Shown here: positions 5,815 to 52,098 of the stretch, piece by piece
Layout of the letters: each line of letters opens with the position of its first letter
Position numbering within the stretch: position 1 is the stretch's first letter
Sequence record: KJ019146.1
DNA: 64,000 nucleotides
Strand: one strand, 5' to 3'
The notes under the pieces: model-generated
The model's input: the letters and a program-made list of their open reading frames with translations, nothing else
What the model was told of the DNA's origin: nothing
Databases searched by the model: none
Made by a program: the position numbers and the translations under genes

Positions 5815-5836
5815 TTGGGGTCTAATTAACCCCATA

Positions 5837-6021: not shown

Positions 6022-6027
6022 ACCCAA

Positions 6028-6099
6028 TCCACAATAGCTCAGCGGTAGAGTCGGCGACTGTTAATCGCCTTGTCCCTGGTTCGAATCCAGGTTGTGGAG
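6028..6099 (+). tRNA. tRNA-Asn (anticodon GTT), CCA not encoded
   Basis: Acceptor TCCACAA/TTGTGGA, anticodon arm GGCGA-ctGTTaa-TCGCC, T arm CCTGG-TTCGAAT-CCAGG. Confidence 0.97.
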
Positions 6100-16248: not shown

Positions 16249-16264
16249 TACTATAGTAGATTCT

Positions 16265-17482
16265 ATGACGATGAGATCGTTTCTAACATTCCTAACCGAA
16301 GCTCGTTCTCGTGCATCCAAGAGAGCCAAAGAGTTGGGACTCACTGGCAACGGTCATGGTGGATGGGAAGATAGCGAAGGTAACCTAGTCGCTATGACTG
16401 TGAAGGGTGATCTGGAGTTTGTGAAGGGAAGAGAACCCAAAGAGGAAGAAGAACCCACTGAAAAGACTTCTGCCCCTGAAGAGGAACCAACATCCAAATC
16501 ACCAGCACCTGGATTGGATCCAGAGGAAACCGATACACCAGAACAGGAAGAACCAGCTCCTGTTCCCAAAGATAAGGGTATTCTAACTGTTGCTTTTGGT
16601 AGGTTTAACCCCCCTACTATTGGGCATGAGAAACTAATCAATACTGTAGCGGGATATGCTGATGATAATGATTACATTATTATCCCCTCTAGGAGTGAAG
16701 ATAAGAAGAAGAATCCTCTAGATGTTGATACGAAAGTCTCTATCATGAGGCAGATGTATCCACAACACGCCGAGAAGATTGTTAACGATCCACACAACAG
16801 AACTATCTTTGATGTGATGCGTAAGGCACATAACGATGGTTACGCTGGTATTCGTATTGTTGGTGGTGGTGATAGAGTAAAAGAATATGAGAAACTAGCT
16901 AACGCATATAATGGATCTACCTATGACTTTGAGGAGATCGATGTAGTCAATGCTGGTGATAGGGATCCAGATTCCGAAGGTGCAGAGGGTATGTCTGCCT
17001 CTAAGATGAGAAAGGCGGCAGCTGATAACGACTTTGATTCTTTCAGAAAGGGAATGCCAAAGACCCTCAGTAACGACCAGATGGTTTCAATCTACACTCA
17101 GGTTCAGAAGTCTATGGGTGTATCTCCTAAGAAAGTTGCTGCTGAGGGGTGGGAAGTTGCCCCTAGACTGTATCCACAGGAACTGAGAGAGGCTTATATC
17201 CAAAACGAAATCTATAATATTGGTGATACTGTCAGCCATGACACCACTGGTATGGTAGGTAAGATTGTAAGAAAGGGAACTAATCACCTCATTTGTGTAA
17301 CAGAAAGTGAGGAAATGTTCAAGACCTGGACACAGGATGTTAGTCCTGCGGATCTAAAACCACAACCAGCAATCTCTACTCCAAAGGAGAGGGAAGTTGG
17401 AACAGATTCCCTTAGATCTTTCCTTCAAAGGATCACTCCAGGAGAGAAAGAGCAATCCTTTATAAATAAACATAAGAAATAA
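16265..17482 (+). CDS. cytidylyltransferase/NMNAT-like HxGH nucleotidyltransferase with N-terminal extension
   Basis: FGRFNPPTIGHEKL, VGGGDRV and MSASKMR motifs. Confidence 0.85.
   Translation: MTMRSFLTFLTEARSRASKRAKELGLTGNGHGGWEDSEGNLVAMTVKGDLEFVKGREPKEEEEPTEKTSAPEEEPTSKSPAPGLDPEETDTPEQEEPAPVPKDKGILTVAFGRFNPPTIGHEKLINTVAGYADDNDYIIIPSRSEDKKKNPLDVDTKVSIMRQMYPQHAEKIVNDPHNRTIFDVMRKAHNDGYAGIRIVGGGDRVKEYEKLANAYNGSTYDFEEIDVVNAGDRDPDSEGAEGMSASKMRKAAADNDFDSFRKGMPKTLSNDQMVSIYTQVQKSMGVSPKKVAAEGWEVAPRLYPQELREAYIQNEIYNIGDTVSHDTTGMVGKIVRKGTNHLICVTESEEMFKTWTQDVSPADLKPQPAISTPKEREVGTDSLRSFLQRITPGEKEQSFINKHKK
17461..17468 (+). promoter_or_regulatory. T4-type late promoter
   Basis: TATAAATA upstream of ORF 17502. 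Confidence 0.7.
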
Positions 17483-34203: not shown

Positions 34204-34228
34204 ACCACTCCTCACGGGGTGGTTTTTT
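34204..34228 (+). terminator. intrinsic terminator
   Basis: ACCACTCC-tcac-GGGGTGGT followed by a T run. Confidence 0.75.
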
Positions 34229-34249: not shown

Positions 34250-34558
34250 TTGGGTTACATTATGAAAGCCGACGCACAACTAGAACACCACGCCAATTGT
34301 TGGAATGCTATTCGAAACAATGATAAGGAATACTTTAAGATAGGAGTTGGTGTTTATAAAACCATCAACGCTGACAGGGAATACTATATCAATAGTCGTA
34401 TTGAAACTGATAAGAAGAGTGATATATCAGAAATGGATCAAGTGAAAGAAGCCCACTCTAAACACTTAAGTTACTTCATTGGATACAAATCAGAAGTAAC
34501 AGTTGAAGCTATCAGTAGTGATTGGAAATCTACATTATACCGGGTTACTACCTGCTAG
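34250..34558 (+). CDS. hypothetical protein
   Basis: ~100-aa ORF; the start may be the ATG at 34262. Confidence 0.6.
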
Positions 34559-34590
34559 GGTGTGTTATAATAGATGAAATGCATGTTGTG

Positions 34591-35589
34591 ATGAAAGCTT
34601 TAATCTCTGGAATTACAGGTCAAGATGGATCCTATCTTGCTGAACTTCTACTTAAGAAGGGGTATGAAGTCCATGGTATTATTCGTAGAACCTCCTCGTT
34701 TAATACAGGAAGAATCGATCATATCTTCGATCAGTTACACCTCCACTACGGGGATTTGACTGACTCCCTGAACATAGTCTCTATCATTAAGGAAGTAGAA
34801 CCTGATGAGATCTACAACCTAGGGGCACAGAGTCATGTGAAGGTATCATTCGAGATCCCTGAATACACTGCACAAACAGACGCTCTGGGAACTCTACGAG
34901 TATTGGAAGCAGTCCGTCTCCTAGGTATGGAGAATAGAGTTCGTATCTATCAGGCTTCCACTAGTGAGTTGTATGGATTAGTTCAGGCAGTTCCACAGAA
35001 AGAAGATACCCCATTCTATCCACGATCCCCATATGGTGTAGCGAAACTCTATGGTTACTGGATTATAAAGAACTACAGAGAGAGTTATGGGATGCACGCT
35101 AGTAGTGGTATCCTATTCAATCATGAGTCGCCACGACGGGGTGAGACCTTTGTAACTCGTAAGATTACTAGGGCACTCTCTCGTATCAGTACAGGACTAC
35201 AAGATGTTCTCTACCTAGGTAACCTAAACGCCAAGAGGGACTGGGGACACGCAGAGGACTTTGTAGAGGCTATGTGGTTGATGCTCCAACAGGATAAACC
35301 TGATGACTATGTGATTGCCACCGGGGAACAATACTCAGTTCGTGAATTTGTAGAGGCATCTGCTGAATACTTTGGTATGAAGATTGAGTGGCAGGGTGAG
35401 GGATTAGATGAAGTGGGTATAGATAGATTCACTAAGAAAGTCGTTGTTCGTGTCAGCGATAAGTATTTCCGTCCAGCAGAAGTTGAGTCTCTCTGGGGAG
35501 ATCCTACCAAGGCTAAAGAGGTATTGGGTTGGAAACCTAAGCATACCTTTAGTTCTTTGGTTGAAGATATGTGTATTTACGGTCAGTGA
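34591..35589 (+). CDS. gmd: GDP-mannose 4,6-dehydratase
   Basis: [38 protein letters not shown] and RDWGHA. ATG 34591 follows TG-T-TATAAT. Confidence 0.96.
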
Positions 35590-35591
35590 TT

Positions 35592-36518
35592 ATGAAAAAG
35601 GGTTCAACGGTAGCAGTATTTGGTTCGGGTGGATTGGCTGGAAGTGCCATCACCAGGGCACTCAGGTGTTACTTTATGGCACATAAGATTCTTACCCCTA
35701 GGAGTAAGGAACTAGACCTAAGAGAACAGGCAGATGTTCGTAGTTGGTTTAAGGAGAACAAAGTTGATTATGTATTCTTAGCCGCCGCCCTAGTTGGTGG
35801 TATTATGGCTAACAAGACTAGAAAGGCAGAGTTCTTACACGACAACCTAATGATGCAGTGTAATGTAATTGACTCTGCATACTATAGTGGAGTAAAGAAA
35901 CTCCTATTCTTAGGTACCTCTTGTATCTATCCAGCAGGAAGACACCATCCACTAGTGGAACATGAACTACTCACAGGACTATTAGAACCAACCAATGACG
36001 CATACGCAATCGCAAAGATCGCAGGGATCAAACAATGTGACTTCTACCGAGAACAATATGGATTTGATGCTATCTCTATCATGCCTCCTAATCTATATGG
36101 TCCTGGAGATAATTTCAATGAGGGATCAGGACATGTCCTCGCCTCATTGATGAATAGGTTTCACCTAGCGAAGGAAGCAGGTGCATCTAGAGTTGAATGT
36201 TGGGGTGATGGATCACCTATGAGAGAGTTTCTATATGTGGATGACTTAGCAGATGCTTCCTTATACTTTATGAATAGTTATAGTGAGTCTGGGCACATTA
36301 ATACTGGGACTGGTAGGGATGTAACTATCAAACAACTAGCGGAGACTATTGCTGATGTAGTTGGATACAAAGGTGAGATAGGTTGGGATACAACTAAACC
36401 CAACGGAAACCCAAGGAAACTACTTGACAGCAGTAGGGCAAACCTGTTAGGATGGGAACCCAAGGTTAAATTTGAAGACGGAATCAAACTCACATACAAC
36501 TGGTATCTAGCACAATGA
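35592..36518 (+). CDS. fcl: GDP-L-fucose synthase family epimerase/reductase (Fcl/WcaG/ColC)
   Basis: AAALVGGIMAN, LFLGTSCIYP, YAIAKIAG, NLYGPGDNF and REFLYVDD. Confidence 0.92.
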   Translation: MKKGSTVAVFGSGGLAGSAITRALRCYFMAHKILTPRSKELDLREQADVRSWFKENKVDYVFLAAALVGGIMANKTRKAEFLHDNLMMQCNVIDSAYYSGVKKLLFLGTSCIYPAGRHHPLVEHELLTGLLEPTNDAYAIAKIAGIKQCDFYREQYGFDAISIMPPNLYGPGDNFNEGSGHVLASLMNRFHLAKEAGASRVECWGDGSPMREFLYVDDLADASLYFMNSYSESGHINTGTGRDVTIKQLAETIADVVGYKGEIGWDTTKPNGNPRKLLDSSRANLLGWEPKVKFEDGIKLTYNWYLAQ

Positions 36519-37708
36519 CAAAGATTACAAATGGATATACGTGGCCTCTTATGAAGGACACTGTGACCAAGAGAGATAGGTTGAGGATGGCAAAGTTTAT
36601 CCTCACCAGTGATAGACTAACACAAGGTAAAGAAGTTCGTAAGTTTGAGGAGCAGTGGAGTGAGTGGCTTGGAGTTAAACATTCTCTTTTTGTTAGCAGT
36701 GGCAGTACCGCTAACCTACTTCTTGTGTCTGCTTGGAAGGAATTATACGAGATCCCAGACCAGTCGAAAGTAATTGTACCTGCTTGTACTTGGGTAACTA
36801 ATGTTGCTCCTATCATCCAGTGTGGTTTGACTCCAATCTTTTGTGACATCAACTTAGAAGACTACTCCTTTGATCTGGATAAACTACAGGATATTCGTGA
36901 TGAATATCAAGATGACATTAGAGGTATCTTTGTTACTCACCTCCTAGGATTTCCTGCTAATGTGGAAAAGTTTCGTGATGTTTTCCCCGACGCTCATATT
37001 CTAGAAGATGTATGTGAGAGTCACGGAGCAGTCCTCCCTAGTGGTGATAAGGCGGGAACCTTTGATGTTGGTGGCACATTTAGTTTCTACTTTGGGCACC
37101 ACATGACTACCATTGAAGGTGGTATGGTGAGTACTAATGATCCAGAACTCTATGATCTAATGAGAATGAAGCGTTCTCATGGGTTAGCGAGAGAATCACT
37201 ATACTTTGAAACATACAAAGAGAAGTATCCTGATGTAAATCCACAGTTTCTCTTCGTTACTGAGGGATATAACTTCCGTAATACTGATCTAGCTGCTGTA
37301 TTAGGACAGTCTCAACTGAAGAGACTAGACAGTATGATTGGGATTCGTAACAGGAACTATGAGTTATACCAACAATTACTAAAGAAACACGAACATGACC
37401 TTACACATGAGTATGGTGGTTCTTTCTATATCCCCTCCACACAGGGGGATGTAAGTAGTTTCTGTTTTCCATTTGTAGTTGATAATATGCACTGTTATCT
37501 TAAGTTAAAAGAACTTCTAGAAGAATACTATGTTGAGTATCGACCTATTGTGAGTGGTAACCTCCTACGACAACCATTCTTGAGAGAATATTCTGCTGAG
37601 TGTCCCAAGGCAGATATAGCCCATGAAAAGGGACTATATATTGGGAATAATCACTTTGTAGATGAGTCTAACTTTCACATGCTAGATGAGATTTTGAGCC
37701 AACTTTGA
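36515..37708 (+). CDS. colD: DegT-family PLP enzyme with active-site His: GDP-4-keto-6-deoxymannose 3-dehydratase (ColD-like)
   Basis: SSGSTANL, EDVCESHGA and FSFYFGHHMTTIEGG, with His where aminotransferases have the PLP-binding Lys. Confidence 0.75.
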   Translation: MTKITNGYTWPLMKDTVTKRDRLRMAKFILTSDRLTQGKEVRKFEEQWSEWLGVKHSLFVSSGSTANLLLVSAWKELYEIPDQSKVIVPACTWVTNVAPIIQCGLTPIFCDINLEDYSFDLDKLQDIRDEYQDDIRGIFVTHLLGFPANVEKFRDVFPDAHILEDVCESHGAVLPSGDKAGTFDVGGTFSFYFGHHMTTIEGGMVSTNDPELYDLMRMKRSHGLARESLYFETYKEKYPDVNPQFLFVTEGYNFRNTDLAAVLGQSQLKRLDSMIGIRNRNYELYQQLLKKHEHDLTHEYGGSFYIPSTQGDVSSFCFPFVVDNMHCYLKLKELLEEYYVEYRPIVSGNLLRQPFLREYSAECPKADIAHEKGLYIGNNHFVDESNFHMLDEILSQL

Positions 37709-37709
37709 T

Positions 37710-38504
37710 ATGACATTTTCATTTAATCATATGGGCAACTTGGGGCATCTGGGAAACCAGATGTTTCAGTATGCCGCACTCATTGGTATGGGGGCTAAGC
37801 ATGGGAGGAGTATTTGTATCCCCCATAAACAAAGTTTTGGGCAATCATACTACCAGGATCTTCGTAGTAATATCTACGATGCTTTCAACCTCTCACCCAA
37901 TGGTGTAGGTATCAGTAGGTTCCCCACAGTTCAGGAAGGTAGTTTCCACTTTGATGAAAACTTATTTGAGAACCCACCAGAGGAGAACTGTAACCTCTAT
38001 GGATTCTTCCAGAGTGAAAAGTGGTTCTCACATATCAAAGAAGGTATTAGGAAAGAGTTCACTCTAAAGGATGAGTACCGGGAAGTGGCACAACTGATGA
38101 GAGAACAACTCTCTGGTCAGGTTGTTGCTATTCATGTTCGTAGAACTGACTACCTATCCAATCCAAACCACGGAGCATTGGGTTTAGATTACTATGAGAA
38201 GGCACTGGAGTTGGTTCCCAATAACCTTACAGTAGTTGTATTCACTGATGATCCAGAGTGGGCTAAAGAACAACCACTCTTCCCAGACGATAGGTTCTTT
38301 GTATCAGAGACAGACTGTCCCTATACAGACCTTGCTCTTATGAGTATGTGTGATTATCATATTATTGCCAACAGTTCATACTCTTGGTGGGGTGCATACT
38401 TATCTGATAGTAAGAAAGTAATTGCTCCTAAACAGTGGTTTGGGGAACCACTTAAAACAAATAACCTGAAAGATCTTTATTGTGATGGGTGGGTGAAACT
38501 ATGA
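37710..38504 (+). CDS. GT11 alpha-1,2-fucosyl/colitosyltransferase
   Basis: GHLGNQMFQYA, GFFQSEKWF, IHVRRTDY and IIANSSYSWWGAYL. Confidence 0.9.
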   Translation: MTFSFNHMGNLGHLGNQMFQYAALIGMGAKHGRSICIPHKQSFGQSYYQDLRSNIYDAFNLSPNGVGISRFPTVQEGSFHFDENLFENPPEENCNLYGFFQSEKWFSHIKEGIRKEFTLKDEYREVAQLMREQLSGQVVAIHVRRTDYLSNPNHGALGLDYYEKALELVPNNLTVVVFTDDPEWAKEQPLFPDDRFFVSETDCPYTDLALMSMCDYHIIANSSYSWWGAYLSDSKKVIAPKQWFGEPLKTNNLKDLYCDGWVKL

Positions 38505-39124
38505 GTAACTTTGCAAGTGCTAAACAGTTTATCAAGAATGGTATTGATACACAACAGGAGTCTATCTCTGGTGGTGGCAGCACTATGGCTTCCACAGTTG
38601 CTTTCAGATACTTCCTACCAAAGTATATCAAACAGTATGGTATTGAGAGTATCTTAGACATTGGGTGTGGTGACTGGCATTGGATGTCTACTATCAGAGA
38701 AGAGTTTCCTGATGTAGACTATGAGGGATGGGATGCCTCTGAGGATATGATTAATCCCATGACTGAGAAGTACGGAACAGAGAATACCAGGTTTGAGGTA
38801 AAGGATATCATTGATAACAAGTATCCCAAAGTGGATTTGGTTATCGCTCGTGATGTTCTATTCCACCTCAAAGAAGATTACCTAAAGAAGGTTCTCAAGA
38901 ATATCAGTAAGGCAGGTGTGAAGTATCTACTAGCAACTACCTTCCCAGGTTTACCTAAGAACGAAGAACTCACTCCTAAGAAATATGACGGTTGGGGATT
39001 CAGACCAATCAATCTGGATATCGAACCTTATAATATGAAAGATTATTGTATCAATGATTTCAAGGAAACCACAGCTCCCAACAGAGGGTATCATCGTCAT
39101 GTGTATTTGTATGAGGTAAAATGA
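38501..39124 (+). CDS. class I SAM-dependent methyltransferase
   Basis: SGGGS, ILDIGCGD and DLVIARDVLFHL. Confidence 0.8.
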   Translation: MSNFASAKQFIKNGIDTQQESISGGGSTMASTVAFRYFLPKYIKQYGIESILDIGCGDWHWMSTIREEFPDVDYEGWDASEDMINPMTEKYGTENTRFEVKDIIDNKYPKVDLVIARDVLFHLKEDYLKKVLKNISKAGVKYLLATTFPGLPKNEELTPKKYDGWGFRPINLDIEPYNMKDYCINDFKETTAPNRGYHRHVYLYEVK

Positions 39125-39273
39125 AGATCGAAATTGAACTCTCTAAAGATGTAGAATACAAAGGAGAGAAACTAGGTGAGTATATCTGGAACCTAGAAGA
39201 GGGAATTAATCATGTTACTGGTTTTGGTGATTCACTTGAGGAATGTTTTAAGGAAATTGTGAGGTTTAGATGA
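39121..39273 (+). CDS. small hypothetical protein (50 aa)
   Basis: Read by hand; ATGA overlaps on both sides. Confidence 0.55.
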   Translation: MKIEIELSKDVEYKGEKLGEYIWNLEEGINHVTGFGDSLEECFKEIVRFR

Positions 39274-40001
39274 AGAAAGTAGCTATTATCTTTATTGGAA
39301 CAGGTAGATACCTAGAGTTTCTACCAAAGTATTATGAACAGGCAGAAGCAAACCTCTTCCCTGACAGACCCAAACACTACTATGTGTTTACTGATGGTGA
39401 CTTAGGTAATGAACTACCTGACAATGTAACTGTATACGAACAGGAACATCTCCAATGGCCATACATCACCCTCTATCGTTTCGGTATTATCCAGAAACAC
39501 CTAGAGGAGATTGAGAAGGAGTGTGGTTTCCTACTCTTTATGGATGCTGATACACAGGTAGTATCCCCTGTATCGTTCGATGAAGTATTCAGGAAGGGAA
39601 AACCCTATACAGGTGTTCATCACCCCTGCCACGCCCTGAATATGCCACCACACAATGAGTTTCCTGGTAGTCTAGAAACTAATACAGCATCCAAGGCAGC
39701 ATGTAAACCTGGTGATGACTTCTCTGTATATTGGCAAGGTTGTGTATGGGGTGGAAACATCAAGGGTGCTCGTAAGATTATTGATACTCTCCACCACAGA
39801 ACTAAACAAGATGAGGAGAATGGAATCATTGCTAAGTGGCATGATGAAAGTCATATCAATAGATACTTCCTTGACAACAAAGATAAGGTGAATACCCTAT
39901 CACCTAGTTTCGCATACCCAGAGTCCTTCACTGAGTATATGGAAGACTACGAACCTAAGATTGTACACCTAGCAAAAGAGAATTCTAAGTATCAGGTATG
40001 A
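39270..40001 (+). CDS. GT6 glycosyltransferase (alpha-1,3-Gal/GalNAc transferase, ABO family)
   Basis: IFIGTGRY, YYVFTD, FMDAD, WQGCVWGG and WHDESHINRY. Confidence 0.88.
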   Translation: MKKVAIIFIGTGRYLEFLPKYYEQAEANLFPDRPKHYYVFTDGDLGNELPDNVTVYEQEHLQWPYITLYRFGIIQKHLEEIEKECGFLLFMDADTQVVSPVSFDEVFRKGKPYTGVHHPCHALNMPPHNEFPGSLETNTASKAACKPGDDFSVYWQGCVWGGNIKGARKIIDTLHHRTKQDEENGIIAKWHDESHINRYFLDNKDKVNTLSPSFAYPESFTEYMEDYEPKIVHLAKENSKYQV

Positions 40002-40621
40002 GTTACTTCACAGATTATGACAACGAATTCACAGTATTCGAGGCACCAAAGAACGGGGGAACTACTCTCCGTCTTTGGATATACTACGCAGGAACAGGGG
40101 AGTTAGTAAAGTCAGCGGAGTCTGAATACTACGCTGGCACTGGAGAAACATACAAACAACTCCAAGAGTGGGGTTATGTGAATGGGGAATACGAGAACCC
40201 CAAGACCCAGATGGTATGTATCAAGAGAGACCCTGTAGATAGGTTTGTAAGTGCCTTCTATGATAAGGTAATCAAAGAGGGGAGAATCAAAGTAACCATC
40301 GATGAGTTTCTCTCAAACTATGAAGAGATACTTGATAAGTCTACCCTCAAGATGAATGATGGTAAGACTAACTTCATGAAGTTTCACTTTGAGTCACAGA
40401 CATATCACTTTGGTAAAGATAGAGATCTATATCATAAGGTCTTTGATATCTCAGAGGTCGGTACTGGTTTGAAGAAGTATCTGGAGGGTAAGTGGAATAT
40501 AGAACTACCTGATGTCCATGCTAGAAATAGTGGTGGTGGTAGAAAGTTTGATCTCTCCAGGGGACAACTGAATAGGGTGAAGGAAATCTACACACAGGAC
40601 TATTATAATGGGTGGTACTGA
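39998..40621 (+). CDS. sulfotransferase family 2-like protein
   Basis: 5'-PSB APKNGGTTL and 3'-PB RDPVDRFVSAF. Confidence 0.7.
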   Translation: MSYFTDYDNEFTVFEAPKNGGTTLRLWIYYAGTGELVKSAESEYYAGTGETYKQLQEWGYVNGEYENPKTQMVCIKRDPVDRFVSAFYDKVIKEGRIKVTIDEFLSNYEEILDKSTLKMNDGKTNFMKFHFESQTYHFGKDRDLYHKVFDISEVGTGLKKYLEGKWNIELPDVHARNSGGGRKFDLSRGQLNRVKEIYTQDYYNGWY

Positions 40622-41393
40622 AGGATATATCCTGATAGGTATTGGTGATAGGTACCTACAGATGACAGAGAACCTCACTAAAACTCTAAAGAAACATGGA
40701 GATAATAGAGGATCCCTAACTATCACAAGATCAGATAATAGGGAACTCTATAGTGAGTGTAACACTGAGTTTGAGAGGAATGGAACTCTACCTAAGATTA
40801 CCTTAGATAGATACTTACCTTTTGATCACAATATATTCCTAGATGCTGATATGTTATGTGTAGGTGATACACAACATGTATGGGATCTATTCAGGAGTAG
40901 TGATCAGTTTGTTCAACAGGTAGGATGTTTGGGAAGAGATCCTAACTTCCATGCTCACCAGTATGAGAGTGAGTTGGGTTTTGAGATTCCTAGAGTCCAT
41001 GGTGGTTGTATCTACATCAATAGAGAGAAACTAGACCCAGGGTTCTTTCCCTATATGAGAGAGTGTTTCCTAAACTATAAACAAATATTTCATAATAGTG
41101 GTCTAACCTATAAGAATAGTAGACCAGATCAACCACTATACGCTCTAGCAAATGGTATGTGGGGATTCAAACCTGTGGATCTATACACTAACCCTATCAT
41201 GACTATCGTGAATGATAGTACTCCACCACCACTAGATAGTGTATTCTTCAATAAGAAGAGAGGTCCTAAGTTAGATACTCCTGTTCCCTTTGTTCATGTA
41301 TTCCGTGGAGAAGAGGGTATGTCTAGGGGTTATACTAGAGGTGACCAGAAGATGTTGTTGTCCCATTATGATTACTACCTGAACTATGAATAA
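40608..41393 (+). CDS. GT-A fold glycosyltransferase (GT8-like)
   Basis: IFLDADML DxD motif, HGG, DQP. Confidence 0.6.
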   Translation: MGGTEGYILIGIGDRYLQMTENLTKTLKKHGDNRGSLTITRSDNRELYSECNTEFERNGTLPKITLDRYLPFDHNIFLDADMLCVGDTQHVWDLFRSSDQFVQQVGCLGRDPNFHAHQYESELGFEIPRVHGGCIYINREKLDPGFFPYMRECFLNYKQIFHNSGLTYKNSRPDQPLYALANGMWGFKPVDLYTNPIMTIVNDSTPPPLDSVFFNKKRGPKLDTPVPFVHVFRGEEGMSRGYTRGDQKMLLSHYDYYLNYE

Positions 41394-42174
41394 AACTATA
41401 TGGATGTGTTGGTTCCAGGGTTGGGATAAGGCACCAGAGATTACAGAGAAGTGTTTAGAGTCCTGGAAACACTACAATAGTGATTGGGATATTGTTCTAC
41501 TAGATGAATCCAACTACAAGGATTACATCTCCATTGATAAAGAACTACCAGGACTGAAGACAAACTATATCTCACTGGGTGATATCCTTCGTCTCTTTCT
41601 ACTAAAAGAGCATGGTGGAGTATGGGCAGATGCAACTATCTTCTGCAACAAACCAGTGGATTGGGTTTTGGATTATGAGGATTCTTTCATCTTCACCAGG
41701 AAGGATAAGATGATTGCCTCTTGGTTTGTTGCTGCTCAGAAAGATTCCCATGTTGTAGATGTATGGTATAATAAGATGTTAGAGTTCTGGAAGTATCGTA
41801 TGGAAAATACAGATACTTTCGAGCAACAATATGGTTGGATACACGCTTTGTTCCGTCAGTCCTACGCTCAGGATAAGGGGTTCAGGGATATTGTAGATAG
41901 TATGGATAAGATTGATTGCATGAGTGATGGTCAATCTAGAGGTAAGGGTCCGCACTTCTTTGCACCCTACAGTAAATACTTCTACAACCCTATCAGTGAC
42001 ACGATAAAGAATCGTATAGACTCTAAAGTTGATCCACTATATAAGTTGTCTTACAAGGCAAACACAGACTGGAGAAGTCCAGAGAACAGGGGTATCCACC
42101 CAGCAGACCAAAAGATTATGTTGGAATATCCAACTAATAGTGAACTACATTATCTACTCAACACATTAAAATGA
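41386..42174 (+). CDS. capsular polysaccharide synthesis protein (GT32-like)
   Basis: IWMCWFQG, DILRLFLLKEHGGVWADAT and YKLSYK. Confidence 0.85.
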   Translation: MNKTIWMCWFQGWDKAPEITEKCLESWKHYNSDWDIVLLDESNYKDYISIDKELPGLKTNYISLGDILRLFLLKEHGGVWADATIFCNKPVDWVLDYEDSFIFTRKDKMIASWFVAAQKDSHVVDVWYNKMLEFWKYRMENTDTFEQQYGWIHALFRQSYAQDKGFRDIVDSMDKIDCMSDGQSRGKGPHFFAPYSKYFYNPISDTIKNRIDSKVDPLYKLSYKANTDWRSPENRGIHPADQKIMLEYPTNSELHYLLNTLK

Positions 42175-43076
42175 CAAATAAATCATTGGTTACCGGTGGC
42201 GCGGGTTTCATCGGGTCACATATTGTGGACCGACTTATTACACTAGGACATCAAGTCGTAGTGATTGACAATGAATCCTCTGATGGTCATGATGAATACC
42301 ATTGGAACAGAAGCGGACAAGTACAAAACCATAAGGCAGACATTCGTGACTACGATGCAATCAAACACTTGTTTGGTGGAGTCAATAATGTTTTTCACCT
42401 TGCCGCTAAAGCATCAGTACAGGCGTCAGTAGATAACCCCCTACCAACTATTGCCACACAGGTAATGGGAACCGCCAATGTATTGGAGGCAGCACGACAA
42501 TCTGGTGTGAGTAAGTTTGTATATTCCTCTACTAGTGCTTGTTATGGTAACAACAACCCCATTCCTAATGTAGAAACGATGAGAGAAGATCCTCTCAACG
42601 CCTATGCTATTGGTAAGTTATCTGGGGAACAACTAGTTCGTGCCTATCACTACCTCTATGGTATGAAGACGGTGGCATTCCGTTATACCAATGTATATGG
42701 GGAGAGGGCAAGACATGTAGGACACTATGCTCCTGCTGTTAGTAAGTTCCTAAAGATGAGAGCACAGGGAGAACCTCTAACTATCTTTGGTGATGGTGCC
42801 CAACGCCGAGACTTTATTCATGTATCTGATGTAGTCAACGCTAACTGCTGTATTACCTATGAGGAACTAGAGCAGTGGGGTGAGACCTATAACATTGGTT
42901 ATGGTAAGAACTGGAGTATCCAAGAGATCGCAGACTCTATCAGTCAGGAACAGATTCACCTATCTGCTCGTACTGGTGAGATGCGTGAGACCCTTGCTGA
43001 TATTGGGAAGGCAAAGGCAGAGTTGATGTGGAAACCAAAGACTGACATCATGGATTGGATTAGGGTACAACTCTGA
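42171..43076 (+). CDS. NAD-dependent nucleotide-sugar epimerase/dehydratase
   Basis: VTGGAGFIGSH, FHLAA, YAIGK, RYTNVYG and RDFIHVSD. Confidence 0.92.
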   Translation: MTNKSLVTGGAGFIGSHIVDRLITLGHQVVVIDNESSDGHDEYHWNRSGQVQNHKADIRDYDAIKHLFGGVNNVFHLAAKASVQASVDNPLPTIATQVMGTANVLEAARQSGVSKFVYSSTSACYGNNNPIPNVETMREDPLNAYAIGKLSGEQLVRAYHYLYGMKTVAFRYTNVYGERARHVGHYAPAVSKFLKMRAQGEPLTIFGDGAQRRDFIHVSDVVNANCCITYEELEQWGETYNIGYGKNWSIQEIADSISQEQIHLSARTGEMRETLADIGKAKAELMWKPKTDIMDWIRVQL

Positions 43077-43693
43077 TGCCAGTATTTCAGAAGGACAACA
43101 AGAAAGTTCTATTCATCCATGTTCCCAAGACTGCAGGAAGTTCTGTGAATAAACTCTTTGTGAATAATGGATATGAAATGTCCTACTATTCTGAGAGTTC
43201 TAAAGATCTATACAATGGATTATGTGGACCGCAACATCTAGACTCACTTCTATTGGAAGATGAGTTCCAAGATTTCTCTCAGTTTGATTATATCTTCTCT
43301 ATCTTCAGAGACCCAGTAGACAGACATCTATCTGAGTTCACCTGGGCACCCTGGGGACTAATGGGTAGAAACATCTACACACCAGAAAGATTTGATGAGT
43401 GGTGTCCTAAGATATTCAGGGCGTATCAGGACTCACCATATAGGATGGATAACCACATTAGACCTCAACATGAGTTCTATGTCAATGGATGTGATGTGTA
43501 TGACTATGAAAATATCAATACACTCACAGAGAAACTATGTGATAAAATAGGTCTAGATAATAAAGAGATGCCATATGAAAGGTCTTCACGATATGATAGT
43601 GAGGATTATGTCATCTATGAAGATACTTACAATTGTATTACTGAATTTTACAAAGGAGACTATCAATGGCAAAAGGATTCAGTCCTGTTGTGA
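43076..43693 (+). CDS. sulfotransferase family 2-like protein
   Basis: FIHVPKTAGSSV, FRDPVDR.LSE and HIRPQ. Confidence 0.8.
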   Translation: MPVFQKDNKKVLFIHVPKTAGSSVNKLFVNNGYEMSYYSESSKDLYNGLCGPQHLDSLLLEDEFQDFSQFDYIFSIFRDPVDRHLSEFTWAPWGLMGRNIYTPERFDEWCPKIFRAYQDSPYRMDNHIRPQHEFYVNGCDVYDYENINTLTEKLCDKIGLDNKEMPYERSSRYDSEDYVIYEDTYNCITEFYKGDYQWQKDSVLL

Positions 43694-44544
43694 CTAAGGA
43701 TAAGAACAAGTCCCAGTTCAAACTACAGGGTGTTCCTAGGATTTACTACATCAGTTTAGATGATCATGCTCATCGTCAAGACTATATGGAGTCCCAGTTT
43801 GAAGACTGGGGCATCACTAACTTCGAAAGAATCTCTGCTCATGATGGTAGAGGTGATAATGATCTGAGTGATATTCTCAAAGGATCTTATCCAAAGATGA
43901 TGAGTTCTGGTGAGGTTGGTTGTGTAACCTCTCACCTAAAGGCACTAAAACACTGGTTAGATACTACAGAGGGTGAAGAGTTTCTCCTTATTATGGAGGA
44001 TGATTGTGATATCTCCACTGCTTCCCACTGGGGGTTCTCCTGGAGAGAGTTTGTTGGGAATATTCCATCCCATGTAGATTGTGTTCAGTTAGCAGTTATC
44101 AACCCATCAGAACTACATATCAAACTCCATATCAGGTTTGTGAATGATTTCTCCACTGCCTCATACCTAATCCGTAGATCACACGCAGAGAAGTTAGTTA
44201 GACTCTATTGTAGGGGTGATAAGTATAAACTTGATAGTGATATCAAACCCAGAGCAGTTGCTGATGATCTTATCTACAACTCTGGTGTGACTCTTGCTAT
44301 GCCTCTATTTGCCTTCAAGATTGCACTAGGTTCCAGTATCCATGATGTCCATATCAATACCTTCCACAAGAGTAGTCATGATGGTATCTGGGAGTTTTGG
44401 AAGAAAACAGCACCAACTATTGAGAACTGGAAACCATTCTTCAACTATGATGCCTATCTGGGAACCCTACCACCCAATGTTGTGGTTCAACAATGGCAGC
44501 AAAAACAGGAATCCAAAGCAAAAGATTCAGGGGCTTCGCAATAG
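43666..44544 (+). CDS. GT25 (Lex2B/LgtB-like) glycosyltransferase
   Basis: YISLD...R, FERISAHDG, GEVGCVTSH and LIMEDD. Confidence 0.85.
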   Translation: MAKGFSPVVTKDKNKSQFKLQGVPRIYYISLDDHAHRQDYMESQFEDWGITNFERISAHDGRGDNDLSDILKGSYPKMMSSGEVGCVTSHLKALKHWLDTTEGEEFLLIMEDDCDISTASHWGFSWREFVGNIPSHVDCVQLAVINPSELHIKLHIRFVNDFSTASYLIRRSHAEKLVRLYCRGDKYKLDSDIKPRAVADDLIYNSGVTLAMPLFAFKIALGSSIHDVHINTFHKSSHDGIWEFWKKTAPTIENWKPFFNYDAYLGTLPPNVVVQQWQQKQESKAKDSGASQ

Positions 44545-44588
44545 AACATATATATGTTATAATATTTACATTCACCCATGAGGTTATT

Positions 44589-44708
44589 ATGAAATTTGGT
44601 TTTACCCCCGAAGCAGAAATCCTAAACGCTCGTTTGGCAATGTTGGGATTCGTTATCGCCGTAGGCACTTACTTGACCACAGGTCAGATTATTCCAGGAG
44701 TTCTTTGA
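44589..44708 (+). CDS. hli: high-light-inducible protein
   Basis: [13 protein letters not shown] chlorophyll-binding motif; TGQIIPG. ATG 44589 follows GAGG. Confidence 0.92.
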
Positions 44709-45001
44709 TGGCGTTTTCTGTAACACTTAGATCACCTACTGGTGAAGATAAAGTTGTAACAGTGGAGGGAGATCAATACATCCTAGATGCCGCAGAGGAA
44801 GCGGGTGTAGATCTCCCATATTCATGTAGAGCTGGTGCTTGTTCATCCTGTGCAGGTAAGATTGTATCTGGAAAGGTGAATCAAGAAGACCAGTCATTCT
44901 TAGATGATGATCAGATCGAAGCAGGTTTCGCACTCTTATGTGTATCTTATGCCGAATCTGATTGTGTGATTGAGACGGAAAAAGAGGAAACCCTTTACTG
45001 A
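44708..45001 (+). CDS. petF: plant-type [2Fe-2S] ferredoxin
   Basis: [16 protein letters not shown]...LLCV. Confidence 0.97.
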
Positions 45002-45006
45002 GACTG

Positions 45007-45156
45007 ATGTCTAATCCAAACGCTCTATATGAAGATATGGAGAAACTGAATGCCCTCTACGAAGAACTTTGTTGGGGGCATAACGATGAACTACAATTTT
45101 CCCATGACGGGGAGAGCATTATTATTACCAATAAAACCCAGGAGAAACAAAAATGA
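45007..45156 (+). CDS. small hypothetical protein (49 aa)
   Basis: Read by hand: MSNPNALYEDMEKLNALYEELCWGH... Confidence 0.6.
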   Translation: MSNPNALYEDMEKLNALYEELCWGHNDELQFSHDGESIIITNKTQEKQK

Positions 45157-45362
45157 CAGTAACAACTGAAGACGGCGGACGCACAAACATGTACGCCACT
45201 GAACCCACTATGTTTATTGATCCTTCTTACACTGAGAAGTATGGTTTAGAAACACACGCGGAACGAGCTGAAACAGCAAACGGGCGTTGGGCAATGATTG
45301 GATTTGTTTCTGGTATTGTATCCTATGTTATTACTGGTAACTTCTTCTTTGGTGTTATCTAA
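45153..45362 (+). CDS. hli: high-light-inducible protein (second copy)
   Basis: AETANGRWAMIGF motif. Confidence 0.92.
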   Translation: MTVTTEDGGRTNMYATEPTMFIDPSYTEKYGLETHAERAETANGRWAMIGFVSGIVSYVITGNFFFGVI

Positions 45363-45367
45363 TATTA

Positions 45368-45396
45368 GAAGGAGGGTTTGATACCCTCCTTTTTTT
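45368..45396 (+). terminator. intrinsic terminator
   Basis: AAGGAGGG-tttgata-CCCTCCTT followed by a T run. Confidence 0.8.
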
Positions 45397-45443: not shown

Positions 45444-47852
45444 ATGGCATTTAAGATTAATGGCGTAGTACGCATTGATAATAGTGGCAACGGTTTTCTG
45501 GGAATTGTAACCGCTACCGACGCTAATATCACAGGAGTTCTCACTGCCACTGAGGTGGATGCGAAAGTATCATCTAAGGCAATAACTGAACAAACAGATG
45601 GAACCGTAGATGATGTAACTGGTGCAGATGAACTATTACTATTAGATGCTGAGACTGGTGGATTACTAAGAGTATCAATAGATGAGTTCGTGCAGGGTTC
45701 AGGCATTGGAACTCTAGTAACGGACTTTGATAACTTAACTGTTACTGGTATCACAACCGTTGCCACCCTCAAAGGTATTGGATCTAATAACATCAGTGTA
45801 GGGAGCACACTTTCCTTTGCTGATGGTACAGAGATCATCATGGGTGACTCTGGTGACTTCAGTATTCATCATGATGGTGACCATACTTACCTAGATGAGA
45901 CGGGGCAGGGTAATCTAAAACTCCGTACAAATAACTTTAGAGTAACAAATATAGCAGAAACAAAACCAGCTATTACAGCACAGGTTACTTCTGGTGTTGA
46001 GTTGTATTTTGATGGTAATAAGAAGATAGAAACTACAAATACTGGTGTTCTTGTGAGTGGTATGCTCACTGCTGATAGATTAAGATCAGGTGATATTGCT
46101 GCTAGAAATGTAATCACACTGGGTATTACCACTATCCAAGATCATTTGGAAGTGAATGATAGTACTGGTTCTGGTACCGAATATAATCTTAATGTTAAGA
46201 CTAATGGTAGTTCTACCTTTGGTGTCTTAGGTAATGGAAATATTCTACTTGGAAACAGTTCCGGTGCTCCATTCATGGCGACGAATGATCACCACGCAAC
46301 TTCCAAGAAGTATGTGGATGATGCTATTGATGATTCCGTCAGCTACATCGGCGCTAGTGCTTGGGGTAGTGTTGCTGCTGATGGATCACTTCGGAATGGA
46401 CTAAACTGCACAACTTCACAAACAAGTGGAGGGGTTTATCAAGTCACGTTCACAACTCCTCTTTCTAATGCAAACTATGCTATCACTGGAGCATCTAGTG
46501 ATAGTGCTTTCTGGGTAAAAGATGGTTCAGAAACAGTCAATGGATTTACAGTTTATATAGTTGATGTAGATGGAAATTCAATAAATAGAGATTTATCCTT
46601 CGCCGTCTTCAGTGCCAACGCCATCGTGCCGCCGTCAGGTGTAGGCGCTGACGCCTGGGGAACATTCTCTGGAACGACTGGCGACCTGCAAGCTGGGATG
46701 AATATCAGCTCAACTACACGTACTGCCCTAGGAGAATATGACGTAGAATTTATAACCGAGATGCCTTCGGACTCAGAATATGCCGTAACCGCAGTATCTA
46801 ATGCAAGTCAAGCAAAGTTTATTAATATACGCAATAAGTCTACAAGTGGTTTTAAGGTTGTAACTAGAGATGGTTCTGGAAATATTTCTGACGGAGCCGT
46901 ATCCTTCGCCGTCCACGCATCATCAACAGTCACGCCAACCTATACCTGGACACGCGACGGCACAACGCTGAAGACTGCTAATGATGGTGATGATGTAGAG
47001 GTGAACGGTCGGGGCCTTTTCGAAAGCAGCGAGCCGGCTGACTATGTTGTGAGAGTAAAAAACACCGACACAGGTACTATCAATCCCGCATGTTTGCTGC
47101 TGGACATGCGAGATGTCGATGCTTCTAATAATTATTCAGCCTTAAGGGTAGTAGGTTACAACACTACAACAGGTCTTGATATAAATTCAGACGGCGCTAT
47201 CACGGCTCAGGGGCAGATAACCGCAAACGTCAGTAACCAAGGCGGAGAGAATAGTGCAATCAAGGCAATTCAAACCAACTCCAACGGGTATGCGGTATGG
47301 GTTGGTGATGGACCTAACTCTACAGATAGAACCGCTTCTATAGGCCCTGATGGAAGAGCCACGTTTTCCTCCGGCAAAATTTCGCTGGGTCCGACCGGCT
47401 CGGGGACGTTTGCAGACAATAACATCTTCCTGCAGTCGGACGGACAAGTCAGATGCACGAACGTAATTACATCTTCAGCTTTGGCAGGCTCAGGCACCAG
47501 ACCATTATATGTCGACTCATCTGGTGGTTTAACTATCAGCTCTTCTGATCGTAGTTTGAAGACGAACATCACTACTCTTCCTGATCAGATACAAGTAGTC
47601 AAAGCATTAAATCCCGTTTCGTTTAATTGGATAGAGAAAGAAAGACTAGGTGCAGGTCTTGAAATTGGATTTATTGCTCAAGAAGTAGAAGAAATCGTTC
47701 CTGAGGTTGTTCGTAGCACTGCCGGAATACTTTCAGTAGATTATGCAAAATTAACCGCAACTTTAACGTCTGCCCTACAGGCAGCACTCACCCGCATCGA
47801 AGCCCTCGAAGCGAAAGTCCAATCACTCGAAGAAGGTGTGACACCTGACTAA
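45444..47852 (+). CDS. tail fibre/receptor-binding protein with C-terminal peptidase S74 chaperone domain
   Basis: Beta-rich G/T/S composition; SDRSLKTNI...GFIAQEV...VDYAKL followed by a coiled coil. Confidence 0.85.
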   Translation: MAFKINGVVRIDNSGNGFLGIVTATDANITGVLTATEVDAKVSSKAITEQTDGTVDDVTGADELLLLDAETGGLLRVSIDEFVQGSGIGTLVTDFDNLTVTGITTVATLKGIGSNNISVGSTLSFADGTEIIMGDSGDFSIHHDGDHTYLDETGQGNLKLRTNNFRVTNIAETKPAITAQVTSGVELYFDGNKKIETTNTGVLVSGMLTADRLRSGDIAARNVITLGITTIQDHLEVNDSTGSGTEYNLNVKTNGSSTFGVLGNGNILLGNSSGAPFMATNDHHATSKKYVDDAIDDSVSYIGASAWGSVAADGSLRNGLNCTTSQTSGGVYQVTFTTPLSNANYAITGASSDSAFWVKDGSETVNGFTVYIVDVDGNSINRDLSFAVFSANAIVPPSGVGADAWGTFSGTTGDLQAGMNISSTTRTALGEYDVEFITEMPSDSEYAVTAVSNASQAKFINIRNKSTSGFKVVTRDGSGNISDGAVSFAVHASSTVTPTYTWTRDGTTLKTANDGDDVEVNGRGLFESSEPADYVVRVKNTDTGTINPACLLLDMRDVDASNNYSALRVVGYNTTTGLDINSDGAITAQGQITANVSNQGGENSAIKAIQTNSNGYAVWVGDGPNSTDRTASIGPDGRATFSSGKISLGPTGSGTFADNNIFLQSDGQVRCTNVITSSALAGSGTRPLYVDSSGGLTISSSDRSLKTNITTLPDQIQVVKALNPVSFNWIEKERLGAGLEIGFIAQEVEEIVPEVVRSTAGILSVDYAKLTATLTSALQAALTRIEALEAKVQSLEEGVTPD

Positions 47853-47907: not shown

Positions 47908-47934
47908 AGAAATGTAACGTTCTTATTACAACAC

Positions 47935-48045
47935 TTCCATCTAACCGAGACCTATGGGGAAGTAAAATACGTCTCTAATACCTACACCGGAGGGTGGTGT
48001 AGGAATAATACTATCGTCAGCTCCCCCTGGCACTACTTACCCTTT
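47935..48045 (+). ncRNA. structured psbA leader, PhotoRC-II-motif-like
   Basis: Stems GAGAC/GTCTC and CCTACACC/GGTGTAGG. The GGAGGGT loop is complementary to downstream ACCCT. Position matches the known motif; not confirmed by search. Confidence 0.55.
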
Positions 48046-51717: not shown

Positions 51718-52098
51718 ATGAAAATCCAACAATCAATGCTTCGTCGTCTCGCCGCTAAGAAAGGAAAGACGCAGAACGGATTCACACTAATTGAACTGAT
51801 GGTGGTTGTTGCTATCGTTGGTGTCCTGTCCGCTGTAGCACTTCCTCAACTCACTAAAGCACAAGACCGTGCTAAGTCCGCAGCCGCATCTTCCACCGCA
51901 TTAAACGCTGCTAAGACTTGTTCAATCGCTATCATCGGCGGTGATTCTACAGAGGGTGACGTCGCTGAAGTTACCACAGGGGACGTTACCAATGGAGCGA
52001 TCACTTGCGCTGATGATGCCGAATTCGTATTCATCGGTGGCGGAGACACATGGACAGTAGCGATGGATGACGGCATTCCCGGTAACCCTTCTAAGTAA
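51718..52098 (+). CDS. pilA: type IV prepilin (major-pilin-like)
   Basis: Basic leader, then G21|F22TLIE26LMVVVAIVGVLSAVALP class III signal peptide, and two Cys in the head domain. Confidence 0.88.
   Translation: MKIQQSMLRRLAAKKGKTQNGFTLIELMVVVAIVGVLSAVALPQLTKAQDRAKSAAASSTALNAAKTCSIAIIGGDSTEGDVAEVTTGDVTNGAITCADDAEFVFIGGGDTWTVAMDDGIPGNPSK

Follow-up and report, generated by a model that had tools for sequence, protein, structure and literature searches.

Among the rare sugars of bacterial surfaces is colitose, which has been described chiefly in enteric O-antigens and in some marine bacteria. Viruses can also provide sugar nucleotides themselves: chlorovirus PBCV-1, a eukaryotic virus without 3-dehydratase, has GMD and GMER enzymes with which it synthesizes the GDP-6-deoxyhexoses used in virus-directed glycosylation, the products being fucose and rhamnose. 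Among the large cyanomyoviruses, P-SSM2, S-SCSM1, S-SKS1, S-SRM01, and DSL-LC03 carry GDP-fucose modules consisting of gmd-fcl, and GT11 and other glycosyltransferase genes are found nearby in a similarly variable glycan island. In Escherichia coli O55:H7 (also O111), gmd, colC (wbdJ), colD (wbdK), and wbgN encode the same four enzyme families as found in the phage DNA analyzed here, and WbgN is a GT11 colitosyltransferase (PMC11987014), as had been stated in the original prediction on this DNA. A literature search revealed no paper tying colitose to phages.

In this study, we analyzed a DNA stretch of 64,000 nucleotides (the window), which matches isolate Syn7803C16 of Synechococcus phage ACG-2014f at 100% identity (KJ019146.1; window coordinate = record coordinate − 124000). 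Near the head of a packed block of 11 kb with 18 ORFs (34262–45362, plus strand), four sugar genes were found. A terminator-like hairpin with T-run upstream (34204–34223, plus strand; 8-bp stem with 5 GC pairs, consensus match only) likely represents the upstream block boundary, and another one (45367–45393, plus strand; 11-bp stem with T-run) the likely block end. The first gene of the block is a 98-aa ORF without assigned function (34262–34558; phrog_3568, no Pfam match). It is followed by gmd (34591–35589), an fcl-like gene (35592–36518), a DegT-family gene (36515–37708), and a GT11 gene (37710–38504), which according to the ORF calls are spaced by +2, −4, and +1 nt, the second junction being a 4-nt ATGA overlap. 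These ORFs lie at exactly the positions that had been predicted, contiguous, overlapping, or 1–2 nt apart; the span 34591–38504 places the four genes correctly, but the glycan cluster continues to approximately 44544. The four-gene cassette is retained in 45 ACG-2014f genomes, and the genes are under purifying selection (dN/dS 0.06–0.14).

The product of gmd is a GDP-mannose 4,6-dehydratase (559 bits on TIGR01472, cutoff 415; 507 bits on PF16363) with 64–65% identity to E. coli Gmd proteins. A gmd gene also adjoins the ColD-type gene at most genome loci and is located within 6 kb of it in 69 of 80 IMG/VR loci. Moreover, at four DPANN archaeal loci both enzymes are encoded by Gmd-ColD fusion ORFs of 741–776 aa, which independently support the pathway link in a "Rosetta-stone" manner.

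The DegT-family protein (203 bits on PF01041 for the DegT fold) is, as judged from its sequence, a ColD-type PMP-dependent GDP-4-keto-6-deoxy-D-mannose 3-dehydratase. Its residues 190–203 are SFYFGHHMTTIEGG, and in pairwise and PDB alignments G194-H195-H196 is aligned with S187-H188-H189 of ColD. Thereby, H195 falls into the column of ColD H188, and the predicted His at the position of the Schiff-base Lys was found. Exactly at this column the mutant structures 3b8x (H188N) and 2r0t (H188K) differ from wild-type ColD, and E. coli O157 perosamine synthase as well as other aminotransferase paralogues have N-K there. All of 37 family members and 80 viral copies have this His, and the motif SFYFGHHMTT does not vary across the family, although motif conservation in the genome-contig loci is partly built in because these were retrieved with a pattern containing FYFGHHMT. 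ColD Ser187 is replaced by Gly194; since this serine is not conserved among characterized dehydratases (10.1101/2021.09.04.459008), it is a weak criterion for ColD. The best PDB sequence match was ColD (2gms; 177 bits, E 6.6e-51), with E1 and perosamine synthase at 108 and 94 bits, and a Foldseek search with the AlphaFold model (pLDDT 91) returned ColD for all of the top 12 matches (TM 0.83–0.90). E. coli ColD shares 45 of the 57 family-invariant residues, RfbH 37, and Per 33. The substrate is presumably GDP-linked.

In the Fcl-like protein, an extended SDR, the Ser/Thr-Tyr-Lys triad as well as the Cys/His acid-base pair are in place, with the catalytic residues T107, C109, Y136, K140, and H179 retained (E. 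coli Fcl numbering; S/T at 107). The protein reached 419 bits on NF047922, the GDP-L-fucose synthase equivalog, and thus remained below the cutoff of 500; E. coli Fcl scored 551, ColD-less phage Fcl proteins 455–462, and E. coli ColC 304. In pairwise comparison it shares 49% identity with E. coli Fcl (301 bits) versus 38% with E. coli O55 ColC (204 bits). Within the clade of cyanophage Fcl proteins, from which the enzyme descends by this tree, the ColD-linked cyanophage Fcl trio is set off by a long stem (0.61). ColD-linked Fcl homologues are polyphyletic, and the Fcl tree requires at least 12 gains or losses of the linkage to ColD. Among the Fcl homologues compared, no residue reliably marks ColC: Tyr75 gave a raw Fisher p of 1.8e-7 and was not significant in independent pairs used as phylogenetic control, and this Fcl-typical residue is retained in 19 of 58 ColD-adjacent homologues. 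In 51 of 81 viral copies, colD has an Fcl-like gene as its direct neighbor; at some viral loci, colD is located beside generic SDR genes without an Fcl-like gene, and in phage S-CAM7 the cassette is present with no other SDR nearby. We infer that the Fcl-like enzyme serves as ColC (GDP-L-colitose synthase), possibly also as GDP-fucose synthase.

The GT11 protein (98.5 bits on PF01531, cutoff 23.9), belonging to the alpha-1,2-fucosyl/colitosyl-transferase family, shares 32% identity with WbgN of E. coli O55, and its HVRRTDY is aligned with HIRRGDY of the latter (H-x-R-R-x-D-Y donor motif). Its gene is located right behind colD in both ACG-2014f and S-CAM7, and the same arrangement is seen at many IMG/VR loci. 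WbgN and human FUT2 each take GDP-Col and GDP-Fuc, and the donor choice of GT11 enzymes is governed by sugar availability and not by sequence (PMC11987014). Therefore, the donor cannot be read from the sequence, and donor and acceptor named below are putative.

The remainder of the cluster, all on the plus strand, encodes a SAM-dependent methyltransferase (38501–39124; Methyltransf_12/25/31), a 50-aa ORF without assigned function (39121–39273; phrog_3687), and a GT6 glycosyltransferase of the ABO/BoGT6a family (39270–40001; PF03414 75.7 bits, NF041524 174 bits), whose best PDB matches are B. ovatus GT6a and human ABO transferases. These are followed by a sulfotransferase-like protein (39998–40621; PF03567 29.5 bits), a 261-aa protein without assigned function but with a faint GT8 resemblance (40608–41393; PF01501 E 0.017, below cutoff; phrog_1903), and a Caps_synth/DXD sugar-binding glycosyltransferase-like protein (41404–42174; PF05704 141 bits, PF04488 35.6 bits). 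An SDR resembling UDP-hexose 4-epimerases of the GalE/WbpP/WbgU type (42171–43076; TIGR01179 176 bits, below cutoff) has UDP-glucose 4-epimerases, WbpP, and WbgU as best PDB matches. A second sulfotransferase-like protein (43076–43693; PF03567 33.6 bits; phrog_3347 "Galactose-3-O-sulfotransferase") and a GT25 glycosyltransferase of the LPS/LOS-type family (43666–44544; PF01755 47.7 bits) complete the glycan genes. With gaps of at most 5 nt, the same block continues with hli, ferredoxin, a 49-aa ORF, and a second hli (44493–45362, GenBank annotation). None of the ORFs of the block encodes a membrane protein, and no flippase, polymerase, or initiating transferase is encoded in the glycan cluster. 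A tail-fibre gene (45444–47852) starts 50 nt past the downstream hairpin, and a phage-encoded type IV pilin-like protein was found at 51718–52098.

Altogether, it is probable that three phage enzymes form a route by which host GDP-mannose is converted to a GDP-3,6-dideoxyhexose, and that the phage also encodes a transferase for this sugar. In this route, Gmd would convert GDP-mannose to GDP-4-keto-6-deoxy-D-mannose, from which the ColD-type enzyme would remove the 3-OH to yield GDP-4-keto-3,6-dideoxy-D-mannose; it would do so without Schiff-base lysine and without Fe-S cluster, using His195 as general base and glutamate for regeneration of PMP. C5 epimerization and C4 reduction by the Fcl-family enzyme would then give GDP-L-colitose, and the same enzyme may also convert the un-dehydrated intermediate to GDP-L-fucose. 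GT11 would transfer the L-sugar in alpha-1,2 linkage onto a galactose-type acceptor, and GT6, GT25, the GalE-like epimerase, the methyltransferase, and the sulfotransferase-like enzymes could build and decorate the remainder of an ABH-like glycan. These downstream enzymes would act in the cytoplasm, with the acceptor coming from the host or the virion. The original prediction had proposed a complete GDP-colitose-type pathway. The ColD-type enzyme, the gene set, and the colC-colD order indeed match O55; the ColC role, the donor, and the target proposed there (host LPS, pili, or the virion) are putative. Because the Fcl-like protein is nearer to Fcl than to ColC, no residue marks ColC, and GT11 enzymes take both donors, GDP-L-colitose is only the most economical reading of the product, possibly beside GDP-fucose, and for the same reasons the claim that the sugar is not simply fucose is unproven.

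Regarding the dehydratase itself, two other functions are suggested by database names. In the GenBank record of S-CAM7, in UniRef, and at JGI, the protein is named as an E1/RfbH-type CDP-4-keto-6-deoxyglucose 3-dehydrase, and the catalytic His is common to E1. However, it scored 183 bits on NF011936 against a cutoff of 423, with 783 for bona fide RfbH. Also, the columns of the E1 [2Fe-2S] cysteines C251, C253, and C261 of RfbH are occupied by Arg, a gap, and Leu; these cysteines, which E. coli ColD likewise lacks, are found in bona fide RfbH as well as in the enzyme of phage S-H68, and the lack of this motif separates ColD from E1 and SpnQ (PMC8987622). In the tree, every His enzyme falls into one clade (support 100), and the family groups with E. 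coli ColD (SH-aLRT 98), the only biochemically characterized ColD reference, which has a long branch and 32% identity; RfbH is separate. Since the neighborhood also contains neither genes of a CDP-glucose pathway nor an E3 reductase, gmd being adjacent or fused instead, we consider an E1-type function highly improbable. A sugar aminotransferase, e.g. a perosamine synthase, would agree with the DegT fold and the label "aminotransferase" in RefSeq and phrog_3139, but is extremely improbable: the Schiff-base position is not occupied by Lys in any family member, Per falls into the outgroup of the tree together with other N-K enzymes, and according to the literature an H-to-K change alone does not turn ColD into an aminotransferase. 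The phylogeny with ColD, Per, and RfbH, which had been proposed as a check, thus agrees with the predicted ColD-type enzyme, as do the His in place of Lys, the best PDB match, and the missing Fe-S cysteines, and a perosamine aminotransferase had rightly been discounted.

With the ColD-type assignment retained, the product can still be read in other ways. As in P-SSM2 and S-SCSM1, the Fcl-like protein could act as an ordinary GDP-L-fucose synthase and GT11 as an alpha-1,2-fucosyltransferase, with a ColD branch that is minor, serves another transferase, or depends on a host reductase. The identity to E. coli Fcl, the complete set of catalytic residues, the nesting among ColD-less cyanophage Fcl proteins, the Tyr75 retained in part of the ColD-adjacent homologues, and the fact that some phages have gmd, fcl, and GT11 and lack colD are in favor of this. 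Nevertheless, we regard it as unlikely, since the overlap of fcl and colD with GT11 at 1 nt, a core conserved in two phage genera and many viral contigs, and the strong purifying selection on colD speak against it; in addition, a dehydratase product without dedicated reductase would be a dead end, and the S-CAM7 cluster contains no other candidate reductase. Very unlikely is a reduction of the ColD product without C5 epimerization or by another enzyme, so that the resulting GDP-3,6-dideoxyhexose would not be L-colitose. That a 3-deoxy substrate undergoes C5 epimerization and 4-reduction is not proven by any sequence feature, and generic SDRs are paired with colD at some viral loci; yet both epimerization residues, Cys109 and His179, are retained, the second SDR of the cluster resembles GalE/WbpP-type UDP-hexose 4-epimerases and not an Rmd-type GDP-sugar reductase, and no GDP-linked 3,6-dideoxyhexose other than colitose is known.

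The cassette, read as a route to a GDP-3,6-dideoxyhexose, recurs in S-CAM7 and in at least 206 IMG/VR contigs. As the ColD-type family is labelled "aminotransferase", "hypothetical protein", or "CDP-...-3-dehydrase" in RefSeq, PHROGs, GenBank, and JGI, virome metabolic surveys misread at least these 206 contigs. If the route is correct, abundant ocean viruses bring their own 3,6-dideoxyhexose pathway and transferases, which would widen the known chemistry of virus-directed glycosylation. The system is tractable because S-CAM7 grows on Synechococcus WH7803. A further-reaching idea, which we put forward as speculation and rate as quite unlikely, is that cyanophages such as ACG-2014f and S-CAM7, along with hundreds of uncultivated relatives, employ the block in infected cells to assemble an ABH-like glycan that is capped with colitose, methylated, and sulfated, and attach it to a non-LPS target, i.e. 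their own tail fibres or capsid or the pilin-like protein, with Fcl as a natural bifunctional Fcl/ColC enzyme. In that case, receptor masking, superinfection, or grazing would be altered.

Compared to known systems, the phage locus resembles that of E. coli O55 in organization: there, too, colC lies ahead of colD and overlaps it by 4 nt, ColD carries the catalytic His but lacks an Fe-S motif, and a GT11 partner is present. The phage locus differs by low identities (ColD 32%, ColC 38%, GT11 32%), by four contiguous genes without manB/manC, wzx, and wzy, and by an Fcl-like enzyme that is closer to Fcl than to ColC. To the GDP-fucose modules of the cyanomyoviruses named above, identities are 75–80% for Gmd and 53–56% for Fcl; those phages have no ColD-type gene, which in ACG-2014f, S-CAM7, and related contigs is inserted between fcl and GT11, and Fcl of the ACG-2014f/S-CAM7 type is on a long branch, unlike Fcl of the ColD-less cyanomyoviruses. 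E1/RfbH as well as the products of E1-like genes in cyanophages S-H68, S-B05, and S-B43 are also PMP-dependent 3-dehydratases with His for Lys, but the E1 types have a C-X57-C-X-C-X7-C Fe-S motif, about 430 aa, a need for a reductase, and CDP-sugars as substrates, features that the window enzyme does not have. Finally, GT11 and GT6 two genes apart and a GalE-like epimerase in the cluster follow the ABO(H)-type logic of human FUT2/ABO and Bacteroides ovatus GT6a, in which GT6 enzymes of the ABO/GT6a kind require a 2′-fucosylated galactose acceptor; unlike there, the L-sugar of the phage may be colitose rather than fucose, and methyl- and sulfotransferases are added.

The window matches Synechococcus phage ACG-2014f isolate Syn7803C16 (KJ019146.1) at 100% identity. 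This phage is a T4-like cyanomyovirus (Kyanoviridae, genus Atlauavirus); coordinates in the window correspond to record coordinates minus 124000. The same stretch is present in 45 ACG-2014f genomes with 95-100% identity and in four S-CAM7 records with 60-80% identity. The original prediction of four contiguous ORFs was exact in its coordinates: gmd (34591-35589; equivalog model 559 bits, cutoff 415), an fcl-like gene (35592-36518; GDP-fucose-synthase model NF047922 419 bits, below the cutoff of 500), a DegT/DnrJ/EryC1 gene (36515-37708; profile match) and a GT11 gene (37710-38504; profile match) follow each other with spacings of +2, -4 and +1 nt. These predicted family assignments are firm. 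The GC content of the cluster (0.40-0.43) is like that of the remainder of the window, and dN/dS values of 0.06-0.14 identify the cassette as a real gene set under selection. Comparison of two ACG-2014f isolates (window 34591-37708 and locus L002:8077-11194) gave dS values of 0.59 for gmd, 0.11 for fcl, 0.012 for colD and 0.026 for GT11, a contrast suggestive of a recombination mosaic whose breakpoint lies within the cassette.

The DegT protein carries the motif SFYFGHHMTTIEGG, and its G194-H195-H196 aligned to S187-H188-H189 of E. coli O55 ColD, thereby confirming that His occupies the position of the Schiff-base Lys. The deposited ColD mutants H188N and H188K depart from the wild type exactly at this column, where the E. 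coli O157 perosamine synthase (Per) has N-K. As references, we used ColD, ColC, WbgN, Gmd and the colanic-acid Fcl from the O-antigen region of E. coli O55:H7 CB9615, Per and Fcl from the E. coli O157 region, and a bona fide Salmonella RfbH (783 bits on model NF011936). On the same RfbH model the phage protein reached 183 bits (cutoff 423). Its PDB sequence matches were best for ColD (177 bits), followed by E1 (108) and perosamine synthase (94). The [2Fe-2S] cysteines, the defining feature of E1 and SpnQ (PMC8987622), aligned to RfbH C193, C251, C253 and C261; RfbH and the E1-like enzyme encoded by cyanophage S-H68 keep all four, and the window family, characterized by SFYFGHHMTT, resembles E. 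coli ColD in retaining only the first and missing the loop that bears the other three. Maximum-likelihood analysis placed all His enzymes in a single clade (support 100), within which E. coli ColD grouped with the whole SFYFGHHMTT family (SH-aLRT 98) apart from the RfbH/E1 types; Per was placed with the Lys enzymes. The phylogeny called for by the original prediction thus separated the protein from both RfbH and Per. Of the 57 near-invariant residues of the family, E. coli ColD shares 45, RfbH 37 and Per 33. The 12 best PDB matches of the AlphaFold model (pLDDT 91) were all ColD chains, followed by E1 and then aminotransferases, with TM-scores of about 0.8 across the whole family, so that the fold alone discriminates weakly. 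The sole mismatch is Ser187 of ColD, replaced by Gly, at a position not conserved among dehydratases (10.1101/2021.09.04.459008). PDB ranking, tree and invariant residues agree with the prediction that the DegT protein is a dehydratase rather than a perosamine synthase; with the Fe-S loop absent, it is very probably a ColD-type, Fe-S-free 3-dehydratase.

A GDP-sugar is the presumable substrate, as read from gene linkage. The ColD homologue nearly always adjoins gmd in genome loci of bacteria and archaea. Four loci of DPANN archaea each have one ORF (741-776 aa) that combines an N-terminal Gmd with a C-terminal ColD-like domain and is followed by an fcl-like gene. These fusion ORFs, from Pacearchaeota and Nanoarchaeota MAGs (L010:4897-7227, L012:4897-7146, L013:4900-7230 and L016:474-2699), are succeeded by a second gmd as well. 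FYFGHHMT was among the patterns used to scan the genome contigs, so motif conservation is partly built in there and these loci are unusable as an argument for it. IMG/VR contained at least 206 stretches encoding relatives; among the best 80, gmd lies within 6 kb in 69 and an fcl-like gene in 53, and the latter directly flanks the colD gene in 51 copies.

The weak link of the pathway is the Fcl-like enzyme, for which the role of ColC is suggested only by its position: the gene overlaps colD by 4 nt, the order colC-colD is that of E. coli O55, and the S-CAM7 cluster holds no further candidate reductase. In sequence, the protein is nearer to E. coli Fcl (49% identity) than to E. coli ColC (38%), which are themselves 39% identical, and the catalytic residues are retained in all three. 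GDP-fucose is therefore a possible co-product. In the Fcl tree, the ColD-linked sequences of ACG-2014f, S-CAM7 and one metagenomic contig formed a clade (100/100) nested among Fcl proteins of cyanophages with gmd and fcl but without colD (P-SSM2, S-SCSM1, S-SKS1, S-SRM01, DSL-LC03). The stem of this clade is 4-9 times as long as neighboring stems, which would fit, without proving, a change of function after the arrival of colD. A ColC signature was sought at Tyr75 of E. coli Fcl, where the phage enzyme has Arg, as does E. coli ColC. In a first set, Tyr occurred in 9/9 ColD-less sequences and another residue in 12/12 ColD-linked ones; with 122 sequences the association was weaker (51 Tyr and 13 non-Tyr unlinked vs. 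19 and 39 linked; Fisher p 1.8e-7), and phylogenetically independent pairs gave no significance (6 pairs, median p 1), so the residue is not diagnostic. As the tree shows at least 12 switches of ColD linkage and Tyr75 failed, ColC forms no separable clade. Scores on NF047922 were likewise discarded as a discriminator, being graded (551, 462, 455, 422, 419, 304) with no clean break. A second SDR (42171-43076), considered as alternative 4-reductase, is instead a GalE/WbpP-type UDP-hexose 4-epimerase, and the second 'Fcl' of some viral loci is actually a GDP-mannose-3,5-epimerase-like paralogue.

The GT11 protein shares 32% identity with WbgN, a known colitosyltransferase (PMC11987014), and keeps the HxRRxDY motif; comparison with the sequences of solved GT11 structures gave no match. 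WbgN and human FUT2 both take GDP-Col as well as GDP-Fuc, so the product is decided by sugar supply (PMC11987014). We regard GDP-L-colitose as a reasonably likely product of the cassette. Of the predicted rare 3,6-dideoxyhexose, 'not simply fucose or perosamine', the ColD-type dehydratase stood and perosamine is very unlikely, but fucose may be made as well; the Fcl-homologous ColC is suggested by gene order and not by sequence.

The cassette forms just the head of a longer unit, in which ORFs between 34262 and 45362 are packed with gaps of at most 32 nt, 4-nt overlaps being commonest, and terminator-like hairpins lie at its upstream (34204-34223) and downstream (45367-45393) ends. Located 3' of GT11 are a SAM methyltransferase, a GT6, two sulfotransferase-like genes (39998-40621 and 43076-43693), a Caps_synth-type transferase, the GalE-like epimerase (42171-43076) and a GT25. 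Among structures, the GT6 is closest to B. ovatus GT6a and to human ABO transferases, and enzymes of this type have 2'-fucosyl-galactose as their acceptor. Two hli genes and a ferredoxin gene (44493-45362) precede the downstream hairpin, and photosynthesis-related and glycan genes thus appear to be co-transcribed. The glycan proteins have no predicted membrane span, and no flippase, polymerase or initiating transferase was found among the block genes, which implies that the glycan would be assembled cytoplasmically, on an acceptor from another source. In S-CAM7 the gmd-fcl-colD-GT11 core is followed by an adenylylsulfate (APS) kinase gene (L030:14639-15208), where the window has sulfotransferase-like genes, then GT25 and a tail-fibre gene; kinase and sulfotransferase-like genes together hint at a sulfated glycan. 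No Rfam match to an RNA element upstream of gmd was found near the cluster; in the S-SCSM1 record, a wcaG RNA is annotated. A promoter scan gave 31 matches vs. 37.9 expected by chance, hence no excess. Elsewhere in the window, a manA motif (RF01745, 90 bits; 5816-6026) is flanked by tRNA genes (5741-5814 and 6028-6099), and a PhotoRC-II motif (RF01717, 69.5 bits; 47921-48016) lies directly upstream of psbA. Positions 51718-52098, about 6 kb downstream of the block, encode a 126-aa protein resembling type IV pilins, in which PF07963 (E 1e-9) marks the N-terminal methylation motif. Pilins are glycosylated in other bacteria.

Related loci occur in other phages. S-H68 encodes an E1/RfbH-like 3-dehydratase (L035:4842-6137; 431 aa) with the His and all four Fe-S cysteines, clustered with a dTDP-4-dehydrorhamnose 3,5-epimerase and a GT11; similar enzymes are present in S-B05, S-B43, RB11-B and RN05-S. 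This cluster is a predicted second, separate deoxy-sugar route in cyanophages. The uncultured 642-kb megaphage LR756502.1 (L031:8001-10100) has fcl-like and colD-like genes in the same order, with motif AHH, and megaphages LR756501 and LR756508 have fcl and lack colD. Several IMG/VR loci (L123-L202) show the order Per-Gmd-Fcl-ColD-GT11-GT11-GT6, with a Lys-type aminotransferase alongside ColD and two or three tandem GT11 genes; in others, colD is paired with a GDP-mannose-3,5-epimerase-like gene.

Cyanophage gmd, fcl, GT11 and GT6 genes were already known, and full-text literature searches gave no link of colitose to cyanophages or phage-encoded synthesis. NCBIfam profile searches matched no ColD or ColC model. 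The DegT protein is named 'hypothetical protein' or 'aminotransferase' in ACG-2014f records and 'aminotransferase' in PHROGs. The best interpretation of the cassette is a colitose-type pathway borne by the phage, a moderate rather than high surprise that provides a useful re-annotation of ColD-family genes. In the S-CAM7 GenBank record, the ColD homologue is a 'putative CDP-4-keto-6-deoxy-D-glucose-3-dehydrase', the reaction class being right and the nucleotide wrong. In the E. coli O55:H7 RefSeq (L028:8701-9867, 16227-17099), the archetypal proteins are named generically by PGAP: ColD as 'DegT/DnrJ/EryC1/StrS family aminotransferase', ColC as 'GDP-L-fucose synthase family protein' and WbgN as 'alpha-1,2-fucosyltransferase'.
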